A program made the position numbers and the translations under genes. Positions 1 to 33,685 of a stretch of 64,000 bases of DNA are shown here, piece after piece. Source of the DNA: Octopus sinensis (Eukaryota); NCBI RefSeq assembly GCF_006345805.1, contig NW_021831847.1:1-64000 (forward strand), in the 5' to 3' direction. Under the pieces are notes generated by a model. The model did not search any database and had not been told where the DNA came from. It saw only the letters and a list, made by a program, of their open reading frames with translations. Each line of letters opens with the position of its first letter. The first letter of the stretch is position 1.

Positions 1-1313
1 TCCTTTTTGCTTTGCTGTCTGTTTGTTTGATTTGTCTTTTTGATTTGTTCAAGATATCTTAAGGCAAATGCACGCATGTAAATTGAGTCAAGAATATCGA
101 TGATTGCTTCGCGCGATGAATTTGTCTTTTTTACATTTTCGATTGTAGATCAGTCGATCTTTTCCAGACTTTTCAACGACTAGAGTTAAGTTTTCGTTGG
201 AACTATCGGTAACTGTATTGATCGATTGAGCAAGATTTGAGGAAAGGTTTAATTATGTCTTTTTTGTGGATCTGATAGGTCAATCTTAGCAAGTTGTTGG
301 TCATTATTTGAATACTTTATTCATGGAATTTGATGTTTAAGTCGAAGGCACTTTCCTGTGAAGTATGAGTTGTGCTGAAAAATCATAAAAAAGACAATAT
401 GAGAATGTCCACTAAAATGGGTAGAAACATCACGGTTTGTATTTAATCGAACGCCTTTTTACAAGTAAGACAGGTTCGGGATCACGAAAGCTGGAAAACT
501 GTGAAAGGAGACATTATGAAATTCATTTGCAAATCCACTTTGACTTTTAATGATTTCAAAACTTTGATTTCTAGACAAAGAAACATCCGCAGAGGTATTG
601 ACAATAAGATTTCCTCTTAGACTTCCTTGCCTATTGTCAGCAATATTTCAAAAATTCGTGCTTTTGACGAGATTGAGTGCTAAGATTGCAGAGCTACTTT
701 GTTTGTAGTTGTTTGCTAGGACATAATCTAAAGTTGTGAGGGTTCACTTACTCAATTTTAAGTCTGCATTTGCTGTGCCTAATGCAGCGCTTTGGCTTAG
801 AGCTTCTAGCAGGACTATCTAAAGTGATCGCGCAGGCACTGCAACATTGCTGGATTTTATAGATTGTGTTAGGAGCACTAAAATTCATATCATGAAGAAT
901 GATAGGTAAAGCTGCTGTTCGAGGATCTGTTGCAAGAGTGACTGTTGCATCTGCAACAACATTAAACGTTACAGAATCCTGATTATCAGAGTAATTCCAG
1001 GAACACATCCAGTTTCCAGTTGTTTTTCCAGTTTCCAATAGAGGTGGAAGGCCCAAATACTATCGGAGCCGCCAATTCATAAAATCACATTATGCTTGTA
1101 ATCATACTTTAATTTGCCAAAGGAACGACTGTTTAACGAGAATGGATTGAACATTTAACCATTATTGAATATTAAAATAAAGTCTGACATGTCATTTCAA
1201 TGTATGGTATTCGACTTGGATCAATTTAAAGAGTTATACAAAATAAGTAAAATTTTTTAATTTTTAATATTAAATTATAAATTTATCTGTAGATTAATAT
1301 AGTTAATTTTAGC

Positions 1314-2831
1314 ATGCTTTTTGGTCGTTTGTTTACACGACTTAGTAAATCTTCTATTTCAAAAAATAACCGATTTTACAAGCTATTTGGGAGCTCAATT
1401 CCGTGTCTCGTTGGAAGTATCTGCGGTTATTTCTACTACGATAACAGTCCTTACATACACATGACTGGTAGTATTAAAGAAAACTTTGAAAATGGGGAAA
1501 ATAGTAGCAAATATATTCAAAAACTACCAAATCACGTGCAATATTTGCTGATCGGAGACGGAGTGGAAATATTCTCCGCCGCTCAGGCGATTCGTGCCTC
1601 GGATGTGACTTCAAAAGTTGCAGTGGTGTGTCCCCGTGGTCACCCGCCTTACATCAGGGACGCATTTGTTAGGGAATTTGTCGACTTTGATCGAGACATC
1701 TCTTCTAGACAAGAAATATACAATGTTTTCAAAAAATTGTTTTTTGAGCAACCCAATTTTTATTTGGACATTTCGGATTATTCAAACATCGAAAATGGGG
1801 CAATTTTCATTGCAAACAACTTAAGAGTCGATTCAGTAGACTCGGAATCCTGCACGGCAAAGTTTGGCCCAGAAATTGTGAAATTCGACCGCTGCCTTGT
1901 CTCACCCTCCGCTGTTCCTAAAATCTCTCGGAACCTAATTCACAACTTGTCTACATTTGACGATTTTTTGGACATTTTTTCGGTCTTGTCGGAGGCTAAA
2001 AATGTGATAATAAGTGGAGATTCGATAATGGTTGCACAACTTATTTCAATCCTTCAAACCCACCCTCAACGATTGTTCAATTTAACTTATGTTCGTCGTT
2101 CAGATCGCCCTCTACTGTCGGGAGTTCTTCCTCTTCATTTGGCTCAAGTTGTGGAGAATGAACTGGAGAAATATGGTCTAAAAGTGATTATCACAAAAGA
2201 AAACACAGAGACTGTCTGTCCTCACGGCGTGAAGGTTAGTCTGTGTTTGGAAGATGGGGTCACTGTTGAGGGGGACCTATATATTGAAATTTCGCCAGAT
2301 TCCAGAATAAACCATCTCTTCGGGACTTCTAGTAGCGAAGAAGGGGAAGTTATGGCCGACAAATATTTGAATGTTAGTCCAAATATTTGGGCGGTCGGAG
2401 ATTCCGTATCTGTCGAGAATTTTTACTTTGGAAAGAGGTCATTTCAAGGATATGACAATGCATTCATGTCAGGAAAATTGGCGGGTCTGAATATGACAGG
2501 ACATGAAATGATTCACAGAATCATTCCTATGTTTTGGTCGTATGTGGGTCCCATAGAATTGGAAGGCTGCGGAGTCCTCGATCCAGTTTTGAGAACAGTC
2601 TCAGTATTTGAAGACGAACAAGCAAAGAGCATTTCGGAACGACGAGGAGTGATATTTTACTTGAATGAAGACAGTGTTATTGTTGGAGTATGCCTTTGGA
2701 ATCCAACGAGAAAATCTTCTTCTCATTTATTACGACAAGTGGTTGCCAGTAAAATTAAGGAAGATGATATTCTGGGGGTTAGCAAGTTAATCAACCTGTT
2801 TGATGTTGAAGATAATAATGACGAGCCTTAA
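1314..2831 (+). CDS. AIFM1: Apoptosis-inducing factor 1-like mitochondrial flavoprotein (505 aa, single exon)
   Basis: Basic N-terminal presequence plus TM segment. YLLIGDG...AAQAIRA, HPPY, IWAVGD, YDNAFMSGKLAGLNM, PMFWS, RGVIFYL and VGVCLWN align with the AIF FAD, NADH and C-terminal domains. Confidence 0.9.
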   Translation: MLFGRLFTRLSKSSISKNNRFYKLFGSSIPCLVGSICGYFYYDNSPYIHMTGSIKENFENGENSSKYIQKLPNHVQYLLIGDGVEIFSAAQAIRASDVTSKVAVVCPRGHPPYIRDAFVREFVDFDRDISSRQEIYNVFKKLFFEQPNFYLDISDYSNIENGAIFIANNLRVDSVDSESCTAKFGPEIVKFDRCLVSPSAVPKISRNLIHNLSTFDDFLDIFSVLSEAKNVIISGDSIMVAQLISILQTHPQRLFNLTYVRRSDRPLLSGVLPLHLAQVVENELEKYGLKVIITKENTETVCPHGVKVSLCLEDGVTVEGDLYIEISPDSRINHLFGTSSSEEGEVMADKYLNVSPNIWAVGDSVSVENFYFGKRSFQGYDNAFMSGKLAGLNMTGHEMIHRIIPMFWSYVGPIELEGCGVLDPVLRTVSVFEDEQAKSISERRGVIFYLNEDSVIVGVCLWNPTRKSSSHLLRQVVASKIKEDDILGVSKLINLFDVEDNNDEP

Positions 2832-2959
2832 AAATATTATAAATGTTTGTATTTTTAACTATTTTTTTCATAATCGCTATAATAAACTTTACAAATAAAA
2901 GGTAATTAAAACACTAATATAAACCAATGCGGTCATTTAAACACTAATCATGAGTTAAA

Positions 2960-3340
2960 AACCCAAATATAATTTTCAAGTAAGCCGGGATGCCGTCTGT
3001 TCTCGAACCTGTCGGTTTGGACAGAGGTGACGGCAAACGCCCTGACGGCTTAACTACATTCCTCTTTGAGCAGGGAAAATCCCTTATATGGGATTCTACC
3101 TGCTGTGACACATTCTCGAACGGGAACCTAGCCATGTCGGCCGTCGACCCAGGCTTTGCTTCCAATCGCGCCGAAGATCTCAAAATCCTAAAGTACGGTC
3201 ACCTCTCCAATTTCGTTTTCATGCCGTTGAGACCTCTGGGGTCTTTGGCCGCAAGTCGCTTTGTTTCCTACGCGGTTTGGGGAGAAGAATCGCCAAAAGG
3301 AGGGACGACCCGAGAGAGTCCTTAACGACTCTCCATTCCC
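2960..3340 (+). mobile_element. CRE-like non-LTR retrotransposon 3' fragment (restriction-like endonuclease)
   Basis: LEPVGLDRGDGKRPDGLT...LIWDSTCCDT...AEDLKILKY is the PD-(D/E)xK RLE signature; degenerate downstream. Confidence 0.8.
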
Positions 3341-3399
3341 GTAATCCGCGGCAACTGCAGTGCGCCTTAAACGCTCTGATGGAACCCTCGTATCGGACC

Positions 3400-3720
3400 C
3401 GGTTGAGATGGCTGAAATATTTTCAACCCACCTCAATAACATCTCTGAAACTGACGGAAGTCAGTAAAAGTGACTTACATGATTCAGAAACTCGTTACAA
3501 ATGCCAAGCCTACGCTAATATAGCACGTTTTTACAAAGGAGAAGAAAGATGTTTAACATGCGGTGGTCCACATGATATGAAAGAATTTTAAAATCCCATA
3601 GCAAACTTTAAATGTTGCATTAACTGTGAATCATCAGTGCACTGGATTACATATGGCGGATGCCCCTCAGCTAAAAATAACAAAATTACACAAGTCAATT
3701 TACTTTCTGAATCCGGATTA
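3400..3720 (+). mobile_element. LINE ORF1/gag-like zinc-knuckle remnant
   Basis: YKCQAYANIARFYKGEERCLTCGGPH and CINCESSVH are degenerate CCHC knuckles with frameshifts. Confidence 0.65.
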
Positions 3721-4831
3721 AACACAGTTTGGGAGAAAGCCCCAAGTGTGACTTTATATTGGACAAACAACAAACTTTGACTTCAGTTTGGAAGAATCGT
3801 TTGCCAACAAAAGTTTTGGAATGCAATGTATCTATTAGAACCCAAATGGATAATCATATGACTCAAAATATAATGACAACTATACGCAGGTCGTCTCAAA
3901 AAAGCTTTCCCCGTTAAAAAGGAACTCAATATGTTGATAGACAGGTCACTTAAATCAAATGAGGCGGAAATCATTAAATTTGGATCTAAATTCTGAATAG
4001 CTATCTTTTGACTGCCGAAAAGAAAACCGAGATGGAAAAATCCTGGGAGAATATTCGATCGAGAAATTTGAAAAGCCAAATCATTTTTCGTGCCATGGAG
4101 ATGATTTCTTAGGGATTTTCCTAACTTCATTCGTATCAAAGCTTCTATGTATATCTCAAAGAAAATATCGTTTTCATTATAAAACCGCAAAAAAAGACCG
4201 GGCCGTTTATAAGATATTTATTTTTCCACTTGAAACTCCAGTTTGATAGTCCAGGAGAATGAAGATGCAATAGAAAGAACAGATAACACATTAGAAGTCT
4301 GTTAAGAAATTTAATGGAGAATAACTCTGCAAAATCTACTTAAAACAAAAAATCCTAAATGTTTCTGGGTTCTATGAAAAAACATTTTTTCAAAGAATAG
4401 ACTTACGTACGGAACCTCTTTCAGCAAACGACAGAACCATATTGAAACGTTGCCTGATCGCGGACGAAGCAGCCCTTTAAGTCGGTAATGAAACGAATGA
4501 TCTATCTAGAGCAAATATAACAATAAATAGCAGTAAAGTAAGTGTGCTTAATCAGTCACTAAAACCAATCGAATACTCTCTATGGTCTTTATTCTGTCCT
4601 AGTTCCTCGGTACACATTCATCAAAAATTACTCATCACATAAACACAGAATAAATACCCACTGCGGAACTGGATTTTCTAAAAGGGACTCACACGCAAGA
4701 AAAAAGAGCAAGGATCATTTTCTCTGTCCTCAATTAATTAACATTGCGGTCTTTACTTAAATAAAGTGTGTTTCCTGCCAGGGCTATAAAGTACTATGAC
4801 TCTCGTGATAAGAAAAATAATAATAAACATG

Positions 4832-5538
4832 TTAGTCACTGAGCAAGCAGTCTAACTCTGCAATATCCATATCATCGAACAGTCCCTCTTCAATGCAGTA
4901 ATCTTCCTCATCTTTTATCCCTGCAAAGAACTCCTTGCCTACACACTCAGCACATTTATTACCCGTCATTCTCACAATACACTCCTGACTCTCACTCATT
5001 TCTTTCTCAAATTGTACTTTCCAACGAGAAAAAGACTCGACGGTCACAGGCGTCCCCCACCGCTCTGGTTCGTCACCAACAGTCTCCCCCTCCACGCACA
5101 CAATCCTCTCACTGACCTGTCGACTCCCTCGAGAATATTCCTTCTCAAACTCGGGTAGAAGACTCAATAGTTCGAATATCATCGGAAGTCCCTTCAGTTT
5201 GCTGGCCTGTGACATTTAATCACTTTTAGAGCACGTGAAGGCTGAGAAAGTCCTCAAGTTGAGTAGCAAACTCCTCGGAGAGATTAGTGAGATCCGCCAC
5301 CTTGAAGAATGGGGGGACATTCGGATATTCGTTGGGAAGTGAGATGCACAGGGAAAATGAGGCTGTGGTTGGAAATTTTGATGTACCTTCAAGGAGAGCG
5401 ATCCTATTCTGTAGTTGGAGTGAGAATTTGTAGACGGGAGGAGTGGAGGATATGACTACTCTCAGTTATATCCAAATTACTGGTTAGATTGTCGGGGTAA
5501 ATGCACTCCAATGATAATAACTCCTCCGCGACGCTCAT
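4832..5538 (-). CDS. RWDD1: RWD domain-containing protein 1 (GIR2-like), with micro-introns
   Basis: MSVAEELLSLECIY, LPNEYPNVPP, GLPMIFELLS, GTPVTVESFSRWKVQFEKE, TG..K.FF and an acidic tail ending LFDDMD. Confidence 0.85.
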
Positions 5539-5620
5539 TTCTGCACTAAATAATTAAACATTATTCATTTAAAAACATATATTTTAAAAATCTATTAATT
5601 TTTGTTTTAAGTTTAAGAAC

Positions 5621-6085
5621 ATGAAAGTGACCCGTTGAGAGATGCATACTGGGGAAGCTTCCGCCAATTTTCCTTGGAGACCATTTGGACAGTTCACTCA
5701 CAGATGTGTCGTTATATTTTGAGACCAAGTCTCAGGTATACATAAAGCCTTAAAAACTTTTTCAAAATTATAAAATGTCTGTCCAAGCTCTCCAGAAAGT
5801 AAACTATCGTGTCATCGTTGCAAAAATCGCATTTCTGAAAAAGTAATTTTACCCTTTTGTCAAGGCTCGGAATCGCCAATTGAAATATGATAGAGTGGGC
5901 AAACGTACAGCAATTTAGTAATCTATAACTAATTAATTAAGAGATTCTCAAGGCGGCTTCATCCATGATATCGTGAGTAAGATCGCATTCCGCTATTGTG
6001 AGCCTCCAGAATCATCATGGCCCTGGCAGAGAATTTCGATTCCCCGGAAACAGCTAAGCTATCAAAACAAGAAACATGTTTCTTA
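5621..6085 (+). other. Possible spliced gene of unknown function, head-to-head with RWDD1
   Basis: ATG 82 nt from the RWDD1 ATG and several GT-AG micro-intron candidates. Every model I built had an in-frame stop, and no family was recognised. Confidence 0.25.
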
Positions 6086-6269
6086 GAATAAATTATAATT
6101 CTTTTACGAATAAAGTCATGTGATAAGTATTAGTCGAATATTCAAACATTTTGGAAATTCAGAAGGAGTGTTATTCTCACACGCCTATTTAATGAAGTTT
6201 GCAGTCTGGCCGTTCAATGTATTTATTCATTGAGCTGTAATTACATTACATTTACATTAGGTGTATTTC

Positions 6270-6540
6270 GCTGGTTCTTCAATGGGATCCAATAAATGGG
6301 TCGTGTTCTTCCAGGTCTGGCGTTCCAGTCCCCAGCAATGAAGCACATGTATGAAGAACTGAGGGTGTTGTATAAATGTGTAAGGTTTGCAAGGACTCTG
6401 ACACCAGTCGGCGTGTACACAGTGATGATTGTGATCAGAGAGTTAGGTCTGGTTCCTTATTTGAGTTGGAGCACCACTATCTTGTCCATGACGGACCACA
6501 CCCAGGATACATGCTTTTGTCCTGATCTTACACTTTCTCA
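6270..6540 (-). mobile_element. LINE apurinic endonuclease fragment
   Basis: Minus-strand reading ITIITVYTPT...CFIAGDWNAR (APE GDxN motif). The listed + strand ORF is its shadow. Confidence 0.7.
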
Positions 6541-6569
6541 AAAATTGAAAATAATTAATTTGTTTATTT

Positions 6570-7830
6570 AAGGAGGGCAAACTCAGGCAGCTCTATCTGC
6601 AAGATTCAACTGTTCTCAGTCTCAGGTTTCACGGATTTTGAAGAATAGAGATAAGTACCTATTCGAGTCGCAAATGAACGTAGAAACTGCATTGTCCGTC
6701 TTGTTTGCTCAAACCAGGACCAAAACCTACCAATAAATGGTCACATACTAACCCACAAAGCTACTTGCTTTGCTAAAATTATGAAAATGGATGACTTTAT
6801 TCCTACTTCAAGTTGGCTTATGCGTTGGAAAGAAACAAAATATCATTTAAACGTATTTATGGGGAGAAAAAAGATTCCGATTTAAATTCTGTTGAATACT
6901 GGTACTAATGGACATTGCAAGATCTTTTAAAAGATTCTAAACCGGAAAACATTTATAATAAAACAGCACTCATATGAAATACTGATCGAAAGTAAAGAAA
7001 AATTAAGGATAGAATAAATGTAATGGCATCCTGCAACATGACGGGTTCGGACAAACACAAATGAAGGTGCTTCAAAGGAATTTAAACACTTCCAGTTGAC
7101 TACATTGTCAATAAGCTATCACGTCAATTTCAGTAGAATTGTAGAATGCATGGATGACATGACGCGTTTTTAAAAACTGGTTATCATGTGTTAACAAGAA
7201 AATGATATTGCAAAAAAGAAATATAGCCATAGTTTTTGACAATTGTGCTGCGTATTCATAAGATCCTGGAAAAAATCAATCAAATGTTAAATTGTCTTTT
7301 ATCCCCATGCATTCGGCCATGTGATATGGGGATCATAAAAAGTCTAAAGCACAACTACAGATTGGCAATTTTACAAAAATTGATTGTTGTAATTAATTCA
7401 GACGATAGTTGTCGCAAATCTGTTGTGAATTTTACCACTTGCTTGGATGCGCTACACATTCTCAAAATGGCTTGGAGGCAAGTCAAAATAACAATTTAAA
7501 ACTCTTTCCGTAAGGCGAGATTCCATGAGGAAGTGTGGGAAAATACGTTTAGTAACGTTAAATTTGACAAAACATGTTGAGGATGAAGAATGTATTTGAA
7601 TCATGTCCGATGAAGAAATATGTTTAATGTCAAGAGATATTTCTTGCAAAGACGATGGGGACGATGAAGATCCCATGCCCCTAAAAACAACCAGTTCGGA
7701 AGCTATGTTGATACGCCAGTTTCTTACTAACAGCTATTTAACAAATAAAATGGATATGGAAAACTTTAATGAATCAGAAAAAAGCGTCCTACGCCTTTGC
7801 CAAAAGACTAGGAAGTACAGACCACAATGA
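6570..7830 (+). mobile_element. Degenerate Tigger/pogo transposase
   Basis: psq-type HTH QAALSARFNCSQSQVSRILKNR, WLMRWK, PCDMGIIKSLKHNYR and LDALHILKMAWRQV (DDE_1), with many stops and frameshifts. Confidence 0.8.
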
Positions 7831-8709
7831 GGATTTCCCTTAACGCAGAGGAACTTGACGATTTCTACTCGCCCCTATGATCGGCTTACTCATCACTGTC
7901 CAGCTCCGACATTCTCCTTATAGTTGGAGATTAAAACGCCAAAGTGCAAAAAGCCTTGACGAATCGAATTGTTTGGGCAGTTACGCTCGAAGGCACTCAT
8001 ACTATTCTGTAAGTCGTTCAGACTGTTTCTCTGTAACAAGACATTCCGACATACAGCTCGACATGCTACGACGTGAACAGGCCAGAAAAAAGACTGCTAT
8101 GGAAATCTTGTTCATATATTCAATCAAATCGATTACATACTATGCAGACAAACTTCCGTTACTCACAGACTTCCGTAAGTACAGTGGCATGATTACCTTG
8201 AGTAATCACCGTTTCATTGCACCTTGTACACAGGAAAGGAAATTGGCCGTGGAGACCTTTTGTGTTTCAGATAATATTCATATAAAGTATGGCGAGAAAT
8301 AATCAAAATGCTGCACACTATTAAACTCATATAGACTACTATGGAAGTATATTTCGATCAGAGTTAAAAAGACTGCTGAGAGGAATTCGTCCAAGGACAT
8401 TCAAGGAAGTTTTGACAAAGAAATAGACAAATTAGCAAAAGAACAAAAGAAACTCCATCGATTAAATGAATCTTAAAACACAATCGACCTCACTGATTTT
8501 TGACTGTACAACTCAGAATTCAACTTTACAAATGTCGATCCGATCCTCCTCTACAACTCTAACCGCTAAAGAACAGAGACAGATAAACTATTTTCACATA
8601 AAAGTCTATAAGAAATAAATAATATTATTTCCAATATTTATGAATAAAATTTATCTAATAATTATATGCTTATATAATAAAATTAAGTTTAATTAGAACA
8701 ACAGTGTAG

Positions 8710-9330
8710 ATGGAGAAGGCCTTATTTGCAATGTCCTGATTTTGGGGTCCGGAGGCACTATTTGGGTGTGTCTCCGGCGTAATTAGAACGAGGGTTGGGT
8801 TTACTGGTGGGAAAAAGCTCAACCCTTCATATCACAATCTGTAAAATTAGTTAATAAATTCAACAGAGGAGATCATACTGAGACTGTCGAAATTGAGTTC
8901 GATTCAAATATAACATCCTATGAAAAACTTGTCGAAATGTTTTGGGAGAATCACGACTATAAATCATTGAGAACACGGCAATACATGTCTGCCATTTTCA
9001 CTCTCAGTCACAAAAACTCGCTGTGGCCATGTCTTCTAAAATCAATCATGAAAACGTCGGGGTGGTCAACACAGTCGTAGAGAACCAGCCGGAAAATTTT
9101 ATGTAGCGGAAAAGTAATTACTTAACCTAATTGTGGTTAGTTATCATCAGAAATATATATTGCGCACATGTTCAAAGATTTTCGACGCTTTGAAGTTGAA
9201 TGACAGCCAAGTAATTGAATCACATGCGGCCTGTAGACTGAACGGTTATCTCGCTGGATATGGGAATTTAGAAGCTTTTGACAAAGTTTTATGGATACAC
9301 TTAACTACTTCATTATATTTTCAGAAATAA
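8710..9330 (+). CDS. msrA: Peptide methionine-S-sulfoxide reductase A with in-frame TGA at the catalytic position (candidate selenoprotein; frameshifted)
   Basis: MEKALFAMS-TGA(8737-8739)-FWGPEALFG..RTRVGFTGG, GDHTE, FWENH, RQYMSAIF, FYVAENYHQKY and RLNGYLAGYG. Micro-introns near 8845-8870 and 9114-9140; frameshifts near 9003 and 9080. Confidence 0.85.
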
Positions 9331-9572
9331 TCACTATTCAAATACTACCACACTTCATGGCTATATACTTTCCGACAATGTCTTGCAATGGACCTATATA
9401 TTGATCTTATGTATGCAAAAAATTAATTCTTATTTTACAAAAAACAGTACAATTCTTTGCTTCGTGGGCAATTATTCTCTTTGAATAACCACTGCGAGAG
9501 AGTAGATAGATGTGCATTCGGTTCCTTCATACATAAATGTAATAATATATGAGCTGGTTTATTCAAAAAAGG

Positions 9573-10567
9573 TCAATTAAACTTGCAAGCATACAACCCA
9601 AGGAGTGATTCCATTGTCTGACTGACAGACTGGAAGACGGGCCGTCTCGAGGACCTTTTGAATCGAAAAGTTTCCACTCCGAGATTTTTGGCCCGTCGAA
9701 GTGTCAGTTGTTCAAAATTTTGGGGAGAAGAAATGGCGGGAATGATATAGACGCACTCGGAACTGAACTCGTGAAGTACATTGTGACCATAAGGAGTGAT
9801 GTAACACAATTTGGAAGAGGGGAATATATTGGTGGGACATTCAGCACTAATTTGGAGACACGTGCATTCCAGAAGGGACGTATAATTCCTTGTTAGAATG
9901 CGGTTGAGATTTCCCTCGAGACTACCCGTGACAGGATAATTTACTTTGTACTGCACAACTTTAGTTTAATGGGGACGCGGACAGTGAGAAGTTGGTGGTT
10001 GATGACTTGCACCAGTTGATGCACCAGCCAGTCCATTTTGGCTGAATTTTGCTCAAAGGACGAGTCAATGCAGACTGTCGGGGAGATGTGCGATATGTAA
10101 CGACTCCGCTGAATACTGCCACTGACATTCACCTCTTACCGTTTAATGTCACTTGGGGACAGCCGTCGGATAAGTCGAGACCCTTGATTGACCAACAGTT
10201 TCCTCTCATTCGGGACTGGTCGTACTTTCTCCTTCTTATTCTGTTTTTTGACCCAGTAGGCAATTCTGTAAATGACTGGGATTGCTCACAGTTTGTCACG
10301 TTGTGCCTTACTGCCTGCAGCCAATGCAGCTGCCCAGTGACGGGTGTCGAGTTGGACGGTCCAATTGCCTAGATAGAGTGCATGGTTCATACTGTAGGCC
10401 TTCCGGATCTCAAATTCCAGTTTGAGTCTGTCTAGTGCCTCTCTCTCCTTGTCGGAAATGTTCTTCATTGCTTCAATGGCTTTAGCAAGGTCATCTTTGT
10501 CGTATCGGTAATTCGTCAATAGTCGGGACAAATATCTTTCAGAGATGACACGAAAACAAGACAACAT
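9573..10567 (-). CDS. TRMT10C: Mitochondrial RNase P protein 1 / tRNA m1R9 methyltransferase 10C
   Basis: C-terminal SPOUT segment IFPSSKLCYITPYGHNVLHEFSSECVYII...TLRRAKNLGVET resembles Trm10; the N-terminus is presequence-like; spliced. Confidence 0.7.
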
Positions 10568-10599
10568 ATATTATTTTAATTTTGATTTAAATTAGAATA

Positions 10600-11322
10600 G
10601 AATTGTTTTTATTACCCAACGAACCAAAACCCACAAAATAACCAAAAATCGTTAACGGGGAGATAAAAACAAGACACCGAAATGTTTCTCTCAGTTGTAC
10701 TCCGTAAGCAAATTTCAATTCGAAACGCCTTTTCCAAATGATCCAAAAAATAGTCACTTTCCTCGAACCAGCTTTCGTACCCAAATATGTGGACTGGCTG
10801 TACACACGTTTTGTACACGTAGATGTACGTTTCAGGATTTCCGGATCCAGATGAAACCTGGCTAAGCTTTTAAGGATCCTTCCACTCCTCTTTCTCTGAT
10901 TTGCTACGTGGTTGGCGTACGGGCCACAACAGTTGACAATTATTCCAAGATAGAGTAAATTAAAGCTCTTGGAGAGATCCATACCATAACCACTCAAAGC
11001 ATAACTTTTTGACCGGGTCTCAGGTTCTTTGGGTTAAAGGAATTACAGGGAAATCAAGCCCAGCAAACACAGCAGGCAGAGGAGTATTTCCATAGCTCGT
11101 TGTGTTCTAGATTGGGAAATAGAACCGAGCAAACAGAATTCCTGTAAACCGAGGTGGAAAAAAATAGCAACAAAGGGCCGGTCCGCGAATTTCGATCTCC
11201 CCAATACGTTTAGTTAGGCTCGCATGGGTAAAATCGTCTGCACGAATGTCGACAGGGGCGTGAGGGTCTTTGCTGCGAAGTTAGTTGATAAACGCATTTT
11301 AGCAAGTCCTTTCCGTTTAGAC
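10600..11322 (-). mobile_element. Non-LTR reverse transcriptase fragment
   Basis: DIRADD (xADD-like motif), TQRAMEILL and FNLLYLGII, with multiple frameshifts. Confidence 0.65.
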
Positions 11323-11425
11323 CAGTGGTTCTCAACCTTTTTTGGTTGCGGACTTCTTGTGAGTGAATTAAAAAATGCGTACCCCAACATATCTTTGCAA
11401 GTTTTTTTTCAACGTTAGTTAGTAG
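11323..11425. mobile_element. Truncated hAT (SPIN/Buster-like) MITE end
   Basis: TIR CAGTGGTTCTCAACC preceded by target-like GTTTAGAC; partner end not found. Confidence 0.65.
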
Positions 11426-12092
11426 CCCCGGACTGCCCGACATGCAGGAATCTATTAAGCGACGCACAGCCTGGGCCGGTCCCTCCCAAAGATCCCGAAG
11501 TGCTGCGCATGGTAGCGAAATTACCGATTCATTTATATTTTTGATATTGTACTTTCGGGATATGAATTCTACTATAGTGGCCATATGATTTTTCTTTGAA
11601 TTGACGACCCGTAGAATTTCCTCTCTTCTTAGGCAGTAATCGGCTTTATGCTCCAAGTCATGATAAAATTGGAATAGCATTCGTTCAGATTTGTTACTGA
11701 CACACTCAAGACCACTTCCAAGTTTATTTCTTGGTAAATAAAGTCTTTCTTTGTTTGCCGGTCGCATGTGAATATGGCTCTCCGTAAGAATTCTGCGGAC
11801 ATTTTTGTCAATTTGTTCAAATTCCCCTGCTCGATATCAATCAATCCAGTATAGTAGTTATATATTGAGAGTGAAAATTCGTTTATAACCTTGAATAAAT
11901 TCAGAGTTTAATTCCGTTTTCGTAAAATTCTTAATCCGCGTAGATGCCTCATCATAAATTTTCTCCATAATTTCTTTTTTAAGGACATTTCTGTTCTTAT
12001 CTTCAAGAACTCCTAGGTATCGGTATCCGTTTAGTCCAGGGTTTCTTAACTGGGGGTACATGTGCCTAGTGGGTACGCGAGAAGATCCAGGG

Positions 12093-14186
12093 CAGGGGTG
12101 GCCAACCTTTTTCACCGGCGAGCTACTTTTCATTTTGCGATTTTTTGGAGATCGACTTATATATTTTAATATCAAAAATTTTATTTTACAATTAAAAATT
12201 AATGCGATTTTTGGCATTGTAATTCACTTGCGATTATTTCAAATTCTGGCTCGTATAAGCTTATTGCTATTCTCATGCAATCCCCAAGATGGTCATCCGT
12301 TAAACGTGTCCTGTATTGAGATTTTATCATTTTCATACTTGAAAATGATGTTTCGGATAAATATGTGCTTCCAAAGCATGAAAGAATTCGTTGATACGAA
12401 TCAATCAAAATTGGATATTTTTCCTGAGACATAAATTTCCACATGTTGACATTTGAATGTAATTTTAAAGTGATGTCATTTTTTAGATTTATAATTTCTA
12501 TTTGACTTTTTCTTCGATCAACGTCAAAAATCTTGCTAAATTCTTCTGAAATATTTTCGATGTCTACATCCATGAACGGAGAAACAAAGAAACTGCATAA
12601 TATAGTAATTTTCTTGAAATCGCTAAATCTGTTATTAAACTCGTTCATTATTTTTTCTAGTACCATAGCAAATTCATTGACATAATGATTTTTATTCACA
12701 AGTTGTTTTGTGAATTCATCTTCAATGTTAGGAAAATGGGTAAAATTTTCTTTTCTAATTTGAGATATCCATAATTCCAACTTCATTATGAAAGCATTTA
12801 TTGAACTGATCATATCGATAATATATCTATTCTTTCCCTGTAATTCTAAATTGAGTTCATTCAGTTTGCTGGTAATATCGGTAAAAAATGCCAAGTTTAT
12901 TAGCCAATCAGGATTTTCAAGAAAATGCCAATTCTTGTTGTTTTCTTTAGAAAATTCTTTAATGTATGATAATAATTCTCTGAAACGACTGAGAATTAAT
13001 CCCTTGCTTAACCATCTTATGTCACAATGTAAAGGTAGATCGCCATAGATTGCATCGACTTGTTCTAGAAAAAGTCGAAATAATCTTCTTTGTAGGGGCT
13101 TGGCTCGGATGGAATTAATAATTTTAACTGTTGTCTCCATAACATAGTTGAAATTTAACATTTTCCCACATAATGCATGTTGGTGAATGATGCAATGATA
13201 TGATAAAAATTTCGGAAAATGTTCATCTTTCCGACAAAATGCAATAAATCCATTTTGATTCCCAATCATTGCAGGGGCTCCATCTGTTGTTATGGATACA
13301 AGTTTCTTCATTAACGGTAATAATTCGAATGATAACAAAAACGTTTTGAAAGAATTATAAATATTTTCACCAGTTGTTCTTTCTTTCATAGGTATAATAG
13401 CAAATAACTCTTCCTTGACAGTTAGATCATGGAAGATTAAACGGGAAAATACACATAGTTGGGCGATATCAATAGCATCGTTTGATTCGTCAAACTGTAG
13501 AGAAAAACACGAACATGCGTAAAGATCCTTTTTTAACTGCGAAAGAAGATTTTCAGAAATGCTTTCAGCCCTTCTGACAATTGACTGTTTTGAGAGCTGA
13601 AGCTCTTTGATGCAATTTGAAATTTCCTGTTTATTTTTCATACCATCAAATAGTGAATCGGCAGCTTCCAAAAAACAAGATTTTAAAATTTCCCCATCAG
13701 TAAAAGGTTTTTTGTGTTTTACGAGGAGACGAGTCACTCGCAATGATGCAATTGTTGCAGATCTGGACGAATTAATAAACTTTTTCAAAATTGTATGTTG
13801 TGAAAAAAAAGATTTTTTTAATTGTTCAACTTTCTCTTCCCGTAATAAGGAATTTAAAGGAAAGTGTTTGTTGAACTCGGGATGTAAAGAATTAAAATGC
13901 CGACAAAGATTTCCCCTTTTTGGTAATGAAATGATTTTATTGCATAGCATACATGTGCATTTTTCCATGTGCATCGTAAAAATATAGTCTTTTTCCCATT
14001 TGGCATTAAATTTATATGATTTGGACTTTTTGTTACACCTCATAACAAGACACGTGAAAAATACTTACTTTAATATTGATAAATATTTTTTTTATAATAA
14101 TTTAAATACAAAAAAAATAATTAGCAATTTATATATCGAGCGATCGACCACGAAACATGCCGCGATCGACCGGTTGGCCACCCCTG
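12093..14186 (-). mobile_element. Intact autonomous hAT transposon (2094 bp)
   Basis: Perfect 15-bp TIRs CAGGGGTGGCCAACC and perfect 8-bp TSD ATCCAGGG (12085-12092, 14187-14194). Confidence 0.95.
12199..14043 (-). CDS. hAT transposase, GTF2IRD2/EPM2AIP1-like (614 aa)
   Basis: BED finger CMLC...RHFNSLH, catalytic FDES, TTDGAPAM and TYLSE, plus HCIIH, RWLS and a C-terminal dimerisation region; uninterrupted ORF. Confidence 0.95.
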   Translation of the reverse strand: MRCNKKSKSYKFNAKWEKDYIFTMHMEKCTCMLCNKIISLPKRGNLCRHFNSLHPEFNKHFPLNSLLREEKVEQLKKSFFSQHTILKKFINSSRSATIASLRVTRLLVKHKKPFTDGEILKSCFLEAADSLFDGMKNKQEISNCIKELQLSKQSIVRRAESISENLLSQLKKDLYACSCFSLQFDESNDAIDIAQLCVFSRLIFHDLTVKEELFAIIPMKERTTGENIYNSFKTFLLSFELLPLMKKLVSITTDGAPAMIGNQNGFIAFCRKDEHFPKFLSYHCIIHQHALCGKMLNFNYVMETTVKIINSIRAKPLQRRLFRLFLEQVDAIYGDLPLHCDIRWLSKGLILSRFRELLSYIKEFSKENNKNWHFLENPDWLINLAFFTDITSKLNELNLELQGKNRYIIDMISSINAFIMKLELWISQIRKENFTHFPNIEDEFTKQLVNKNHYVNEFAMVLEKIMNEFNNRFSDFKKITILCSFFVSPFMDVDIENISEEFSKIFDVDRRKSQIEIINLKNDITLKLHSNVNMWKFMSQEKYPILIDSYQRILSCFGSTYLSETSFSSMKMIKSQYRTRLTDDHLGDCMRIAISLYEPEFEIIASELQCQKSH

Positions 14187-16288
14187 ATCCAGGGGGTACG
14201 CGAAACAATTTTTGTGATTATTCAGATATGTTTCAATTCTTGCACACTTATGGAATTTTGAAGTAAAATGATTCCAAAGTATTCGTTATTGACTATGGTT
14301 AGTATGCAATATTTAATTCCTTATCCAACAACATATTACTAAAAATAAATCTCGTAATCGATTAAAAGTTGGAGATGATATGCGAATCGCTCTTAGCAAC
14401 ATGGATTCGAATATTAGAAAACTTGTTGCAGAAAAGCAACAACAAATATCTCGCTAGAATTAAATCTTTTACACTTTTTCGGCATAAAATATTTTATTGA
14501 TTTTTTAGTTAGAAAATAATTTATATTTTATAATTAAATCATTTATCTCAAAAAAAGATGTGTAAAAATTTAAGAATCGATAGGGGGTACACGGGATCCA
14601 TTTTTAACCCCAAGGGGTATAATTTATCAAAAATTTGAAAAAGGTTAAAAACCGCTGGTCTAGTCCATCAAGCAAACGGGCTTTATCAGACAAAGACTTC
14701 ACATTTGTCGCAGATTATCAAAATTTCTTTCAAATCCAGCTGCATCGAAGAATGATTCGACTTCTTCCAGCATTTTTTCCATTTTATCACTTTGATAAGA
14801 AAGCAATTTAATATCATCCATAAATAAAAGGTGATTTGTTACATAAACAAGCTGACCGTGTCTCCAATTCCCCATTGTTACTTTCGGGTATTTTCCATTT
14901 AACATTCGATCCAAAGGGTCCAATACCAACACAAAGATCTGTGGCGACAAAGAGTCTCCTTGTAAAATTCCTCTTCTTATTTTTAAAAAATTTTTGTTAA
15001 AAAAATTCTAGACTCCGTCACACCCGCATGCTTTCCAATTAGGAAGCATCTTGATAATATTAATAATTGCCTCATCCGTAAATTCTGCACGAATATTCTC
15101 TGATCCAGTCACTTTGGTGACCAGAAAATTGCTATTCTTGGATTCATGTTGATCCCAGATTTTGCTCCAGAAAGGGAGGCATTCCTCCTCATTGAAATTA
15201 ATTATCTTTCTCTTATTATCTCCACTGATGTTTCTATAGAACCTTCTCCTGTTCAATTCAAAAGACCAGTTGGCTTTTCGGAACCCCTTCCTTGATTCAT
15301 AGACTCGCAATTTTTTCTCTACAATTTTTATTCCATCTCGGATTAAGAAAGCAATTCTTTCGAATTCTCCCCTCTTCGATTTTTTAAATCCATATGAGCA
15401 CAAAGTATTACGCGTTTCTTCATCAAATTGCTTTTTTTCTTTCATTTCACTAGCAGTTTTGATTTGTTCAAGCTGCTGTTTTAGTTTAATGAGTTTGCTC
15501 TTCATTGATTCTTCCCAATTACTCTTAGTTCTAATTTTCTTGGTAAGGCTCTCATATGTGCACTGTCCTGCATAGATGATATCAGTAATATCGTTGATAT
15601 TTAAATTGTGCACAGAATCAATATATTCTTTAATTGAAGCATTGATCCCATTTATAATTTCCTTCTTAAGCAATTGTCTTGGGATTTTTCTAGTCGTGTT
15701 ACGGAGGTTCCTTCCCGTTATACGTATTTTCTCAATTTGGGAACAAAACTTTTCAAAACAATTCTCAAAATTGGAAATCTCAGCCTTCTGGGACTCCTCC
15801 ATAGGTAGACCACAAAGTGGTTCACTCGATTTGACAGAAAGCAGTCTCCTGACATTGACAACAGATTTCGCTGTCTCGAATTTGGAGTTAAGAGCATTTG
15901 TAATGAGAGACCACCCACCGCGGGGAATCCTGCCGAATCTGGATCTTGCGGACTCAACGACCTTCGTATAGATAAATTTTCAAAATCCAAATTTGTAGAT
16001 TTTCGGTACATTTTGCGTACATATTATATTCGAGTTTATTTAGTAGGTTAATCTTACCGATTTCATCAGTTTCAATTTCATCATAAAATATTTTGTCCTC
16101 TTCTCGATTGAATAATTGTTTGTTTTCCACAATTCGTTAAGTAACATCCTCAAGTCCTCATCCGTCAGTCTACTTTCAAAATGCACCAAATCATTTCCTT
16201 TCTGATTAAATTTTGGCCCGAAAATTTATTATAATTGTTTCTTCAAATTGAATATAGCCAACAATTGCAACTACGCGAGATCTAAAAA

Positions 16289-17183: not shown

Positions 17184-17923
<740 letters not shown>

Positions 17924-17974
17924 TAATTTATTTCGTTTAATATTCATTCAGGTTTAACATATGGATCATTATTT

Positions 17975-22881: not shown

Positions 22882-27405
<4,524 letters not shown>

Positions 27406-30560: not shown

Positions 30561-33525
30561 CTAAAGAAGTTCAGCTGCCAAATCTTTCAATTGGTTGAGT
30601 TTTTCTGAGTCAAATCCCAACCTGTCCATCGCTTTTCGATAGATGAGTTTTAAGACTTCACGTTTATCTCCAAACATATTCTCCATCAGCACCAAACAAA
30701 AAACAGTGAAAAATTCTGTATCACTGACTCCAGAAGCCTAGAATAAAACGCTTAGCGAAACCTCTGATTTTATATTATAAGATTCTTTGTTGACATACTT
30801 CATAGTTTCAAAAAAGTCATTTGTCGGAACAAAAAGTCCGTCTGATCGTTGCATTTTTATTATTTTTATTAATTCGTTCTCAGACTGTCCTTTATTGCTA
30901 TCAACTTGAGGCTCTGAATCCGTTTCAGACCAGCCTTTTTGTGATTTATATAAAGTTGGCTGAGAACTACCGACTGAGCGAGAAGCATTGGAAGCATACA
31001 TAGATCCACTTGCCATACCAAAACCGCCTTGTGATGCAAAACACAAAGGTGGCTGAGAACCAACGAGTGAGCGAGGAGCATTGGAAGCATACATAGATCC
31101 ACTTGCCATACCAAAACCGCCTTGTGATGCAAAACACAAAGGTGGCTGAGAACCAACGAGTGAGCAAGGAGCATTGGAAGCATACATAGATCCACTTGCC
31201 ATACCAAAACCGCCTTGTGATGCAAAACACAAAGGTGGCTGAGAACCAACGAGTGAGCAAGGAGCATTGGAAGCATACATAGATCCACTTGCCATACCAA
31301 AACCGCCTTGTGATGCAAAACACAAAGGTGGCTGAGAACCAACGAGTGAGCAAGGAGCATGGAAGCATACATAGATCCACTTGCCATACCAAAACCGCCT
31401 TGTGATGCAAAACACAAAGGTGGCTGAGAACCAACGAGTGAGCAAGGAGCATTGGAAGCATACATAGATCCACTTGCCATACCAAAACCGCCTTGTGATG
31501 CAAAACACAAAGTTGGCTGAGAACTACCGAGTGAGCGAGGAGCATTGGAGGCATACATAGATCCACTTGCCATACCAAAACCGCCTTTTGATGCAAAACA
31601 CAAAGGTGGCTGAGAATTACAGTCAACTCCGTCAAATGAAGTGACTTCCTGGTACAAGCATTCTTCGTCAACTCCGACAAATGAAGTGACTCTGCTGATA
31701 ATGTTGGCCTTGAGACTAATCTCAACCGCTTTTGACTTGATTTCGTCTTTGTTGTTATCAAATTCATCGTCTAAAGAATAATGATTAATATTCCACCTTT
31801 GTAGTTCGCAGCTATTCGTGCAAGAAATTCCTTTGCGGCATATCTGAACACAGCAAAGTCCTCTCGTTTGGGCAACACGACTACTGGAAGTTGAGACACA
31901 CTCTCCACGAATTCTCCATTTGAAAACCCGGAATATCGGATATGCACACTTTCCATGTTATTCAGCTTTAAATATTCCAAACTACCACAAACCTTACAAG
32001 TATTCGAAAGAGTGTAGAAAGTGGTGTAAAGAGCATGATTTATATAGACGGTCCTTTCTCTTGGAATGAAGGGAATTAATCCATCACAGTCGACGTGGAG
32101 TTTTGCATTAGTTAGATTACCACGTGTTGCCTCGTTCACGACTTTGATGACTTTGATATCAATATTGGTTGATTTATCATCAACAAATTCGCTGGTTCCA
32201 TTTCCTGCAGACGCCATATTCTCAATCAATGCAGAGGAAACTCCACTTCCAATACCAATTGTGAACACTCTAAGAAGATGACAGAATAAGACTACTGGTT
32301 GTCCTCGGAAAATCTTCTTACAGCATTAATCACTTCCCGGTCGTTGGCTACGGAGCCATCAGATATGAGTATGATCTATAATGACATATTTGCACGACCT
32401 TTCGATTGTAGTGTGGCACAGTCGGCTGATCAAATATGCTAAGCAAAGGTTGAAGGATTTCTGTCCCGCCCATGTCTGCATTCAAATTATCGATATAACT
32501 CAACGCCTTCTTTTTGGCATTTTCGTCGGCAAATGGCAAAGAACAAAATCATTAAAAACCGCTTACTTTGTGAACAAATATTCAAAATGACTCCCAAATC
32601 CTACAATATTGAAGTAAGACCGGGGCGGGAGACTCAGAACCCCAATCGTTAGAGCTTCTCCCGCTCGTTTAATACTGTTTCCAATCATGCTCCCTGATCT
32701 GTCGACCAAAAATACAAATTCTTGTTGCATTTCTGTAATTTTTTTTTCTTCGAAATGTGGGATGTGGGTCAGCATGAGAACATTAGTCTCCCCCTCTTCC
32801 AGAATTGCTCTTCCAAGCTCATTCTCAGCATATTTAATGTAAATATGTATGTCTTGATGCTTGAGAGGGAGTTGAATAAGTTTGAACGTACGTGGTTGGT
32901 GTTCGAATGCCACTTCTTTGACATTCGAATAAATTCTTTTGATATTTCCAGTCATACAATCAATATTTCCAGTAAAGCTCATCAAGTTCAATGTTTTCTT
33001 ATCTTTTAAATATATTTCATGTGGTGCAGTGCTGTGTATAGGCACATAACGAGGGATCAGTTCGAGAGGAAGAACAAAGGAGGAGATTAAGTCCTCGTGG
33101 TTGTATGATAGAGGAACCAAATAACGAAATTTGACTTTAACGGCTTGATTCGGCATTATGTTGCCCACTTTTAGGGATATTATGTCATCGGCTTTGTGGA
33201 AACCCAAAAAGGCCATTTTTTTCTTTGAAATTGCTTCTTCGTATCTTTTTTGGGCCTCTTTTTTTTCGATGCATTTTCCTTCGACTGTCCTATCTCCTAT
33301 TTCTGCCACGAATCGGTAAACTGAGGCTGAACTTTTTATAGGAAACGAGATTGCGCTGTCCATTGTATTTTTGAGTTTGTTGTTGTAGGTTATGGAGTAA
33401 CCCACATCTGCAAACATGTCCATAATGTTTGCTTCACAATCAATAGACGTAGGTTCAAACTCATCTGGTGAGTTAAATAAATTTCCAGAATTTATGTCAA
33501 TAATAATTACATTAGTAACCCACAT
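30561..33525 (-). CDS. vWA5A-like VIT-vWA protein with an internal 31-aa repeat array; frameshifted at 31360
   Basis: VIT domain (FPIKSSASVYRFVAEIG..EAQKRYEEA), MIDAS FLVDRSGSM, SYFNIVGFGS, DMGGTEILQPL, LISDG, FTIGIGSG, AVEISLKANIISRVTSFVGVD and LIKIIKMQRSDG. Start approximate. Confidence 0.85.
30956..31622 (-). repeat. Tandem array, 7 x 93 bp (GMASGSMYASNAPCSLVGSQPPLCFASQGGF)
   Basis: GATCCACTTGCCATACC recurs at spacings 93, 93, 93, 92, 93, 93; no unique spacers. Confidence 0.97.
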
Positions 33526-33685
33526 AGAGAGAAAATTTCAGATCTATTTTTTAATAATTCCTATTGATATAGGTTAACCAATGTTTAATGTTTATTCCAA
33601 AGCCGTTATTACCTGAGTATATAAATGAGCAAATTCTTTGATCATAAACAAGTTTTTATATTTCTTGAAACTAATTAAAAAAGAA

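Follow-up and report, generated by a model that had tools for sequence, protein, structure and literature searches.

An in-frame TGA stands at the catalytic position of a methionine sulfoxide reductase A (MsrA) gene near the start of contig NW_021831847.1 (C8318) of the Octopus sinensis assembly GCF_006345805.1, and the question raised by this locus is whether that codon specifies selenocysteine (Sec), marks a lesion or is an error. The window analysed was the first 64,000 nt of the contig. On balance it is probable that the TGA is the inherited Sec codon of a selenoprotein-type MsrA in a Sec-competent compact genome, likely that of a dicyemid, and that the window copy is a damaged duplicate of a gene that is intact elsewhere on the contig. 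What the analysis shows directly are the sequence, gene models, homology, machinery genes and the similarity and specificity of the hairpins described below; Sec insertion itself we infer.

Two copies of one MsrA gene

Re-reading of the letters and a Pfam search bore out the sequence observation of the original prediction: an ATG opens a frame (M-E-K-A-L-F-A-M-S-*-F-W-G-P-E) in which codon 10 is TGA at the catalytic residue, and downstream of it the frame enters canonical MsrA sequence (Table 1). The TGA falls on the single catalytic codon out of ~194. With the stop read as cysteine, the window copy (copy A) matched the Pfam family PMSR (PF01625, E 6.9e-34, profile positions 1-147 of 153) and the 'Selenoprotein MsrA helical domain' (PF20939, E 2e-5). 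The active-site and conserved motifs S-U-F-W-G, GDHTE, QYMSAIF and FYVAENYHQKY were all present, with the coding sequence spread across three reading frames of the window.

A whole-assembly search with PF01625 retrieved a second copy ~155 kb downstream on C8318 (copy B) and an unrelated long-intron MsrA on C17. Copy B has four exons, 194 codons and introns of 26, 27 and 23 nt, is open throughout, and encodes the protein MEKALFAMSUFWGPEALFGCVSGVIRTRVGFTGGKKLNPSYHNLGDHTETVEIEFDSNITSYEKLVEMFWENHDYKSLRTRQYMSAIFTLSHKQLAVAMSSKINHENVGVVNTVVEPAGKFYVAENYHQKYILRTCSKIFDALKLNDSQVIESHAACRLNGYLAGYGNLEAFDKECGDWGLSESVLEKVREIIK. All 33 invariant columns of the family alignment are retained, and residues 4-193 align with the Clostridium oremlandii selenoprotein MsrA (4LWJ and related entries) at E 2e-45. 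The model of the last exon was confirmed by this alignment, in which copy B matches the 4LWJ-type chains as far as its residue 193. Copy B, outside the window, is the candidate functional gene.

Compared with copy B, copy A carries a 1-nt deletion and, at ~9079-9082, a 2-nt insertion, which together give a net shift of +1 and leave the frame broken. It also lacks exon 4, the stop codon, the hairpin of the 3' untranslated region (3'UTR) that resembles a selenocysteine insertion sequence (SECIS) and is absent from the whole window, and the last ~20 residues of the PF20939 helical domain. As assembled, copy A would yield no more than 93 residues of MsrA and then 21 residues out of frame; it appears unable to make MsrA and is presumably a pseudogene fragment, to the extent that the assembly is accurate. 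The helical domain is essential for activity in the C. oremlandii enzyme (PMC4333827), so the truncation would be inactivating by itself. The feature in the window thus seems to be a duplicate of a Sec-MsrA gene that has no function, or else an allele of that gene that is null or mis-assembled.

Table 1. Coordinates of the two MsrA copies and their parts (window positions unless a contig is given)
Feature	Position	Strand	Details
Duplicated block at contig start	1..9292	+	97.8 % identical to C8318:155,525-164,785 (BLAST)
Copy A, exon 1	8710..8840	+	ATG at 8710-8712; M-E-K-A-L-F-A-M-S-U-F-W-G-P-E...Y-H-N-L
Copy A, in-frame TGA (codon 10)	8737..8739	+	At catalytic Cys/Sec position; same in sister copy and nearest homologues
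Copy A, intron 1	8841..8866	+	26 nt, GT...AG
Copy A, exon 2	8867..9113	+	GDHTETVEIEFD...QYMSAIF...FYVAE; holds both frame-breaking indels
Copy A, 1-nt deletion	9014..9015	+	CACAAA-AAC vs CACAAACAAC in copy B; frame shifted
Copy A, premature TAG and 2-nt 'AG' insertion	9078..9082	+	TAG at 9078-9080 in shifted frame; GTAGAGAACC vs GTAGAACC in copy B
Copy A, intron 2	9114..9140	+	27 nt, GT...AG, phase 2; junction codon AA-T (Asn), giving FYVAENYHQKY
Copy A, segment between intron 2 and intron 3 stump	9141..9285	+	
Copy A, intron 3 stump	9286..9292	+	Similarity to intact gene stops here
MsrA copy B (L007)	C8318:164,204-164,864		ATG 164,204; TGA 164,231-164,233; stop TGA 164,862-164,864
MsrA-B SECIS-shaped hairpin	C8318:~164,866-164,945		3'UTR

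Copy A closes a 9.3-kb block whose sister lies ~155 kb away on the same contig. The two are separated by 108 substitutions (transitions to transversions 70:38), equal to 1.17 % substitution divergence, and by 11 indels of 1-30 nt; these differences are real divergence, not homopolymer noise. The block is predicted to be a segmental duplicate, and so a paralogue, or else a second haplotype that the assembly mis-joined to the contig end, and the divergence does not separate the two because it is about as large as the heterozygosity of Dicyema japonicum (1.24 %, PMC6736024). The truncation of copy A, or a jump by the assembler, may be due to a mobile element.

It is rather unlikely that the window copy owes its defects to something other than biology, positions 1-9292 being an alternative haplotype or a poorly supported, mis-joined contig end, so that there is one MsrA locus and the window TGA is its Sec codon seen again. 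The placement of the block exactly at the contig start, the fit of its divergence to D. japonicum heterozygosity, the end of similarity beside transposon-like sequence (a possible assembler jump point) and the doubling of many compact-genome loci (SPS2 on C9041/C10277, eEFSec on C12596/C10363, a tRNA-Sec relic on C2502/C12622) are consistent with such a mis-join. However, substitution-dominated differences with multi-base indels are typical of real variation, the two frame-breaking indels are present even if copy A is an allele, a neighbouring open reading frame (ORF) of the same block, encoding a protein like apoptosis-inducing factor (AIF), is intact, and the two copies share one contig.

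The intact AIF-like ORF (window 1293-2831, +) encodes, without introns, a 512-residue flavoprotein with AIF_C and Pyr_redox_2 domains. Transposon-like ORFs (window 9293-16000) start directly past the duplication breakpoint: an ORF resembling a reverse transcriptase C-terminus (11210-11836, -), which has no Pfam match and is ~76 % similar to C8318:173,011-173,324; an intact 621-residue hAT transposase with its dimerisation domain (12199-14064, -); and an unannotated ORF of 323 residues (15008-15979, -).

The compact genome and its selenocysteine machinery

The assembly comprises 2.72 Gb in 13,516 contigs. The MsrA gene on C17 belongs to the canonical type with Cys (…GYCGLGGTGVSCP); its exons lie ~6 kb apart, and it shares 94 % identity with its counterpart in Octopus bimaculoides and 85 % with that in Argonauta. 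Because of this match, the bulk genome was taken as octopus. C8318 and other unplaced contigs carry dense genes with 23-28-nt introns at a guanine-cytosine (GC) content of ~37 %, and C8318 also bears ORFs like those of long interspersed nuclear elements and DNA transposons. SepSecS, SPS and PSTK were each found twice: on chromosome-scale contigs, where the gene extends over 12-22 kb, and on small contigs, where its exons are compact and lie back to back.

The named best matches of the window MsrA were all metazoan. Among animals, introns so short have been reported only for Dicyema japonicum and myxobolid myxozoans (PMC13644364), and D. japonicum (67.5-Mb genome, 36.7 % GC, 49 % repeats) has the renal sac of Octopus sinensis as its host site (PMC6736024). 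The window most likely comes from a dicyemid mesozoan (a spiralian) co-assembled with its octopus host. A myxozoan origin was rejected since the host in the assembly is an octopus rather than a fish (PMC13644364), and a ciliate origin since TAA and TAG act as stops. The original prediction had hinted at a cnidarian, in place of which a dicyemid is the most likely lineage.

Large tiny-intron contigs included C8318 (429 kb), C6303 (959 kb), C1794 (1.29 Mb), C7755 (854 kb), C2502 (669 kb), C9002 (500 kb), C7757 (488 kb), C10363 (421 kb) and C9495 (350 kb). An eRF3/HBS1-like gene was also doubled, on C4944 and C9004, and the doubling of loci across contigs (SPS2, eEFSec, eRF3/HBS1-like) suggests unmerged haplotypes.

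The Sec machinery (tRNA-Sec, PSTK, SepSecS, SPS2 and eEFSec) was looked for on the tiny-intron contigs, with a second, compact copy sought for each gene. The whole-assembly form of this search, as first proposed, would be confounded and return a false positive because the octopus host has its own full machinery; on the tiny-intron contigs, tRNA-Sec, SepSecS, eEFSec, SPS2 and a PSTK-like gene were all found. Matches to the tRNA-Sec family RF01852 were of two sequence types, one on octopus chromosomes C24 and C3 and the other on C6303. The latter (C6303:758,628-758,713) scored 76 bits, was called by ARAGORN as tRNA-SeC with anticodon tca, has a 6-bp D-stem, a long variable arm and a 4-bp T-stem, and lies next to a P450-reductase-like gene with ~25-nt introns. 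Degenerate copies of the compact type were seen at C2502:274,178-274,262 and C12622:186,467-186,551; with a 1-nt D-arm deletion and a disrupted 3' strand of the acceptor they received no ARAGORN call, and they are probably tRNA pseudogenes.

The host SepSecS gene extends over 22 kb on C2, and its compact counterpart is a 1.2-kb gene on C8594 (TIGR03531, E 3.7e-56). The host SPS gene is on C1; compact SPS2, on C9041 and C10277, scored 212 bits against selD, above the cut-off, and reads ...LTKYTELKG-TGA-GCKV..., with the TGA at the canonical Sec position (KG-U-GCKV). The host PSTK gene is on C2, and a compact P-loop kinase on C8999 had the eukaryotic PSTK equivalog TIGR03575 as its best match (E 2.7e-23). 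The compact eEFSec gene, on C12596 and C10363, starts MASFNVSVGILGHVDCGKT...TAAFDKNPQSKERGITLDLGFS; its best NCBIfam match was selB (181 bits vs 123 for EF-Tu) and it contains the C-terminal RIFT domain PF21131 (2.6e-14). With its own tRNA-Sec(UCA), PSTK-like kinase, SepSecS, eEFSec and SPS2, the compact genome is, as judged from gene content, Sec-competent.

The SPS2 loci were C9041:~42-45 kb (L054), C10277:~18.5-20 kb (L053) and C7755:113.4 kb (L052). The last of these is a transposon-interrupted 5' fragment followed by reverse-transcriptase-like sequence, and one exon of the C10277 gene differs from the C9041 copy and may contain a frameshift. The assembly's best selB-family match (190 bits) was a 457-residue stop-free frame on an octopus chromosome (C5:118,666,591-118,667,448, -), which may be a large exon, or an intronless copy, of the host eEFSec.

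A second selenoprotein gene beside SPS2 was SelW on C9495 (~200.9-201.3 kb, L057, minus strand), which reads M-S-H-K-L-S-I-F-Y-C-T-S-U-G-Y..., with a CxxU motif once a 28-nt intron is removed (Rdx, 1.2e-17). A SelW-like paralogue (C7757:318.6 kb, L058) lacks both Sec and Cys at its redox position. Sep15/SelM matches were confined to octopus chromosomes, and SelK matches to octopus chromosomes plus one weak match on the small contig C377. A GPx gene with TGA on C4278 was rejected as a selenoprotein of the compact genome, as it looks like host sequence (microsatellites, isolated exon); the compact GPx, on C2502, is without TGA. Pyr_redox_dim matches on the small contigs C11928 (95,218-95,454, -), C12465 (11,387-11,611, +) and C9082 (330,755-331,021, +, containing TGA) could include a thioredoxin (glutathione) reductase with C-terminal Sec.

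SECIS-like hairpins in three 3'UTRs

A stable hairpin follows the stop of copy B directly (L007:1661-1752, folding free energy -24.2 kcal/mol, z -3.25) and holds AAUAAA, at ~C8318:164,933, in its 3' arm. The SPS2 3'UTR folds in the shape of a type-1 SECIS, within 1.3 kcal/mol of the minimum free energy (MFE), as GGAGUCAGAU-UAUG-UGA-U-UAU-UCU-UCACA-AAGUA-UGUGA-UUU-AUA-U-GA-UUC-AUCUGACUUU. The SelW 3'UTR holds an element of the same architecture (AAAGGC-CUGU-UGA-C-UGA-CUU-UGACA-CAAAAAU-UGUCA-UUU-UCA-C-GA-AUU-GUCUUU), and the MsrA-B hairpin can adopt it (...UUCCCG-AUG-UGA-C-GAA-UUU-GAACG-CAAGUU-UGGUC-AUU-UUC-U-GA-AAUA-CGG(AU)GAA...). All three elements show a UGA...GA quartet between helices I and II and apical AA at 11-13 nt. 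They were aligned under guidance of the model, as MAFFT mis-registered SPS2 and SelW; 97.5 % of cells in this alignment pair, vs 32-50 % with the partners slid, and six pairs change on both sides, figures that come from three sequences fitted to the structure.

A covariance model built from SPS2 only recovered SelW in the predicted register (14.4 bits) and ranked the MsrA-B hairpin first in its 3-kb locus, again in the predicted register (7.5 bits, E 1.5); with a model of SPS2 plus SelW, too, the MsrA-B hairpin was the top local match (10.2 bits, E 0.37 per 6 kb). Another covariance-model match, L057:4679-4760, follows an SRPK-like kinase and was judged to be chance.

A structural descriptor was run over 439 kb of compact-genome sequence on both strands. 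It asks for UGA-N followed by 3-4 bp, then for a symmetric loop of 2-3 nt and a further 5-6 positions below an apical loop with AA, and for N-GA on the return side, with helix I no shorter than 6 bp. It matched four sites only, all on the sense strand: the 3'UTR of MsrA-B, those of two SPS2 loci and that of SelW. Shuffles gave 0.1 matches per 439 kb. A descriptor drawn from SPS2 and SelW only and widened mechanically by ±1 returned the same four sites (shuffles 0.6 per 439 kb). Since the descriptor found no SECIS-like site anywhere in the 64-kb window, copy A was scored as being without a SECIS.

A first, strict SECISearch-like pattern matched nothing, controls included. A fold-based enumerator found nothing canonical after either MsrA copy and a plausible AUGA SECIS in L025, the crustacean-like transcript, from a public run, that is the closest Sec-MsrA homologue (1119-1160, ~300 nt past the stop, with a perfect 8-bp helix I), on which Rfam reported nothing at E <= 1. 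Rfam cmscan also found no SECIS in the SPS2 and SelW loci or in the TGA-containing homologue transcripts. The Rfam negative is uninformative, because Rfam also misses genes that must have a SECIS.

The following points weigh against our interpretation. Rfam cmscan at E <= 10 found no SECIS (RF00031) at the MsrA loci. The MsrA-B element has one A·G mismatch and requires a 2-nt bulge in helix I, and its SECIS-like fold lies 3.4 kcal/mol above the MFE structure, in which the GUGA is paired instead. The base before the UGA is G in MsrA-B, G in SPS2 and U in SelW, not the canonical A. The scores of the MsrA-B hairpin (7.5-10.2 bits) are under the 12-18-bit noise of a 222-kb scan, the descriptor was drawn up once the elements had been seen, and it loses MsrA when the helix I bulge is disallowed. 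Beyond the hairpin, the PSTK match on C8999 is partial and below the full-length cut-off, the indels of copy A depend on the assembly for their reality, and the dicyemid identity is based on intron size, host and literature rather than on marker-gene phylogeny.

Like eukaryotic type-1 SECIS elements (RF00031, including GUGA_AA variants), the three elements have a helix I, an internal loop, a quartet of UGA/GA sheared pairs, a helix II and a 3'UTR site, and their apical AA likewise follows the UGA by 12-13 nt in the type-1 manner. They differ in that each of the three has a symmetric 3x3 loop, rich in U, that breaks helix II, and they are missed by the Rfam model. Sponges and green algae are known to have GUGA_AA elements (PMC3473315); the UUGA core of the SelW element, with U preceding the quartet, is unusual. 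On the results as a whole, it is likely that MsrA-B is followed by a functional SECIS.

That both MsrA copies are instead relics is improbable. Sec would then be decoded for SPS2 and SelW, the MsrA hairpin would be no working SECIS (perhaps a terminator or a poly(A)-associated stem), and translation would stop at codon 10. The weak scores given by covariance models of the other two genes, the competing MFE fold, the demonstrable decay of copy A and the inactive SECIS-less MsrA duplicates of another spiralian (Jiang et al., PMC3473315) all fit two relics. Yet copy B shows no other defect in 194 codons, has three correctly phased tiny introns and keeps every invariant residue, and its hairpin shares with the SPS2 and SelW elements a geometry that the descriptor encountered at no other site in 439 kb.

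The preferred reading, that of an inherited Sec codon, would work as follows. In the intact copy B, UGA would be recoded to Sec under the direction of a stem-loop that extends from the stop codon to just before or at the AAUAAA. This stem-loop would be built like a SECIS: from helix I it would lead through a kink-turn quartet (UGA/GA), 3 bp of helix, a symmetric loop rich in U and 5 bp of helix to an apical loop with AA 13 nt after the UGA, and its core would be G-UGA rather than A-UGA. Copy A would be a duplicate or alternative haplotype in which two indels broke the frame and from which exon 4 and the SECIS were lost.

Descent of the TGA codon and its meaning

The closest relatives of the MsrA protein were 47-50 % identical and came from a sponge, crustaceans, an annelid, an echinoderm, mites and spiders, all with the helical domain. 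In the alignment the best homologue matches read ...GMS-W-FWFPE, and NCBI 'partial' models begin just past the catalytic column. On DNA look-up, homologues P0001 and P0003 matched their records only 'with_TGA=W', so that their catalytic codon is TGA (...MS[TGA]FWFPE). The Sec forms and the window gene have the context MS-U-FW, vs G-C-FW in the Cys forms. No MsrA orthologue above 50 % identity was present in the protein collection searched. By its distribution among these sequences, the TGA is read as an ancestral Sec codon retained by descent.

That the TGA arose through an error of sequencing, or lately through a nonsense mutation in what had been a normal TGC/TGT Cys codon, is accordingly hard to credit: although a single third-position change would be enough and the window copy has further lesions, TGA also stands at this codon in the sister copy, which is otherwise intact, and in the closest homologues of other phyla, and it is the sharing of both TGA and the MS-U-FW context, that of Sec forms, which makes a fresh mutation or base-calling error very unlikely.

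The original prediction had held that UGA is still a stop in this genome, with global reassignment unlikely, and the genes bore this out. Rab1 ends GGA TGT TGC TGA TAA (17912-17926), copy B itself terminates at TGA, and among ten compact genes modelled, the nine with a clear C-terminus used TAA (four), TAG (three) and TGA (two). That UGA is a standard amino acid (Cys or Trp), through code reassignment or efficient near-cognate read-through and with selenium not involved, is scarcely tenable: the frame is open but for the TGA and table 4 gene callers put W there in the homologues, yet TGA ends Rab1 (after its CC motif) and MsrA-B, no in-frame TGA occurs in the conserved 512-codon AIF-like and 621-codon hAT ORFs or in the exons of SepSecS and eEFSec, the in-frame TGAs observed in compact genes were all at known Sec positions, and a dedicated tRNA-Sec with a Sec synthesis pathway is present.

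Sec-MsrA is widespread in marine invertebrates (sponge, placozoan, cnidarian, annelid and amphioxus; Jiang et al. 2012, PMC3473315). With these forms, and with those of crustaceans and echinoderms found here, the present gene shares the PF01625 + PF20939 subfamily, 47-50 % identity, the TGA column, the MS-U-FW context and a SECIS that is expected in the 3'UTR. In Capitella, moreover, a second MsrA copy that is incomplete and SECIS-less has been reported (PMC3473315), a precedent for copy A. The present gene differs from the marine-invertebrate genes in its likely dicyemid origin, its introns of 23-27 nt, its 3'UTR of ~100 nt, and a SECIS-like element that abuts the stop codon with a core of GUGA, not AUGA.

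The MsrA of Clostridium (Alkaliphilus) oremlandii (PDB 4LWJ-4LWM, 4U66, 7C13; PMC4333827) is alike over its full length, helical domain included, and has Sec in xUFWG; it differs in using a bacterial SECIS inside the coding region together with SelB, and in being a strict 1-Cys enzyme, where the protein studied here contains four extra cysteines (C20, C136, C155 and C176). Canonical animal MsrA (human, E. coli type; the octopus C17 gene) has the PMSR catalytic fold and the GxFWG active site in common with it, but its catalytic residue is Cys, its GYCG...C tail carries resolving cysteines and it lacks the helical domain; similarity (~E 1e-22) covers the catalytic domain only. Domain architecture, active-site context and the conserved UGA thus characterize the gene, at the level of sequence, as an invertebrate/CoMsrA-type selenoprotein MsrA.

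Elsewhere in the window, a GC-rich block (23080-27200; 46-52 % vs ~35 % elsewhere) holds a gene with tiny introns for the largest subunit of RNA polymerase (Rpb1-family domains 1, 2 and 5). At 30738-31957 (-) three frames are all open over a tandem amino-acid repeat with units like SQPPLCFASQGGFGMASGSMYASNAP, which is upstream of, or fused to, a gene with VIT and vWA domains (32563-33537, -). A fragment of a pogo/Tigger-type DDE_1 transposase lies at 39429-40091 (-).

The original prediction had proposed that a reduced lineage kept, or recently lost, a Sec-dependent enzyme. The inherited Sec codon and the reduced, Sec-keeping animal stand; the window copy, frameshifted and stripped of its final exon and SECIS, would not, as assembled, serve as that enzyme. 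The likely dicyemid lineage appears, from its gene complement, to keep the Sec pathway together with three or more genes for selenoproteins. A wider proposal is one that we hold to be evenly balanced between right and wrong: dicyemids, which rank with the most reduced of known animals, would have a complete Sec system, a minimal selenoproteome (SPS2, SelW, MsrA and possibly TrxR) and lineage-specific SECIS elements of ~60-80 nt that abut the stop in ~100-150-nt 3'UTRs, have G or U before the UGA and a U-rich 3x3 loop in helix II, and are invisible to the Rfam model used, with copy A either decaying as a paralogue or segregating as a null allele.

The Sec-MsrA of invertebrates has been on record since 2012 and is not new as an enzyme, and no report of a dicyemid selenoprotein was found in the literature searched. 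What is new is that a Sec-competent state with a tiny selenoproteome is pointed to in a dicyemid, a lineage stripped of much of the animal toolkit. Some reduced parasites, such as flatworms, keep Sec, and others, among them many nematodes and insects, lose it. The dicyemid case bears on why reduced parasites retain or lose Sec. An octopus assembly with megabase-scale contigs of a probable renal parasite means that presence/absence tests can be answered by the wrong organism, and three concordant examples of compact, non-AUGA SECIS elements that the Rfam model misses would be useful for selenoprotein annotation in fast-evolving genomes. If the wider proposal is true, the damaged window copy would be the loss of a selenoprotein caught in progress.

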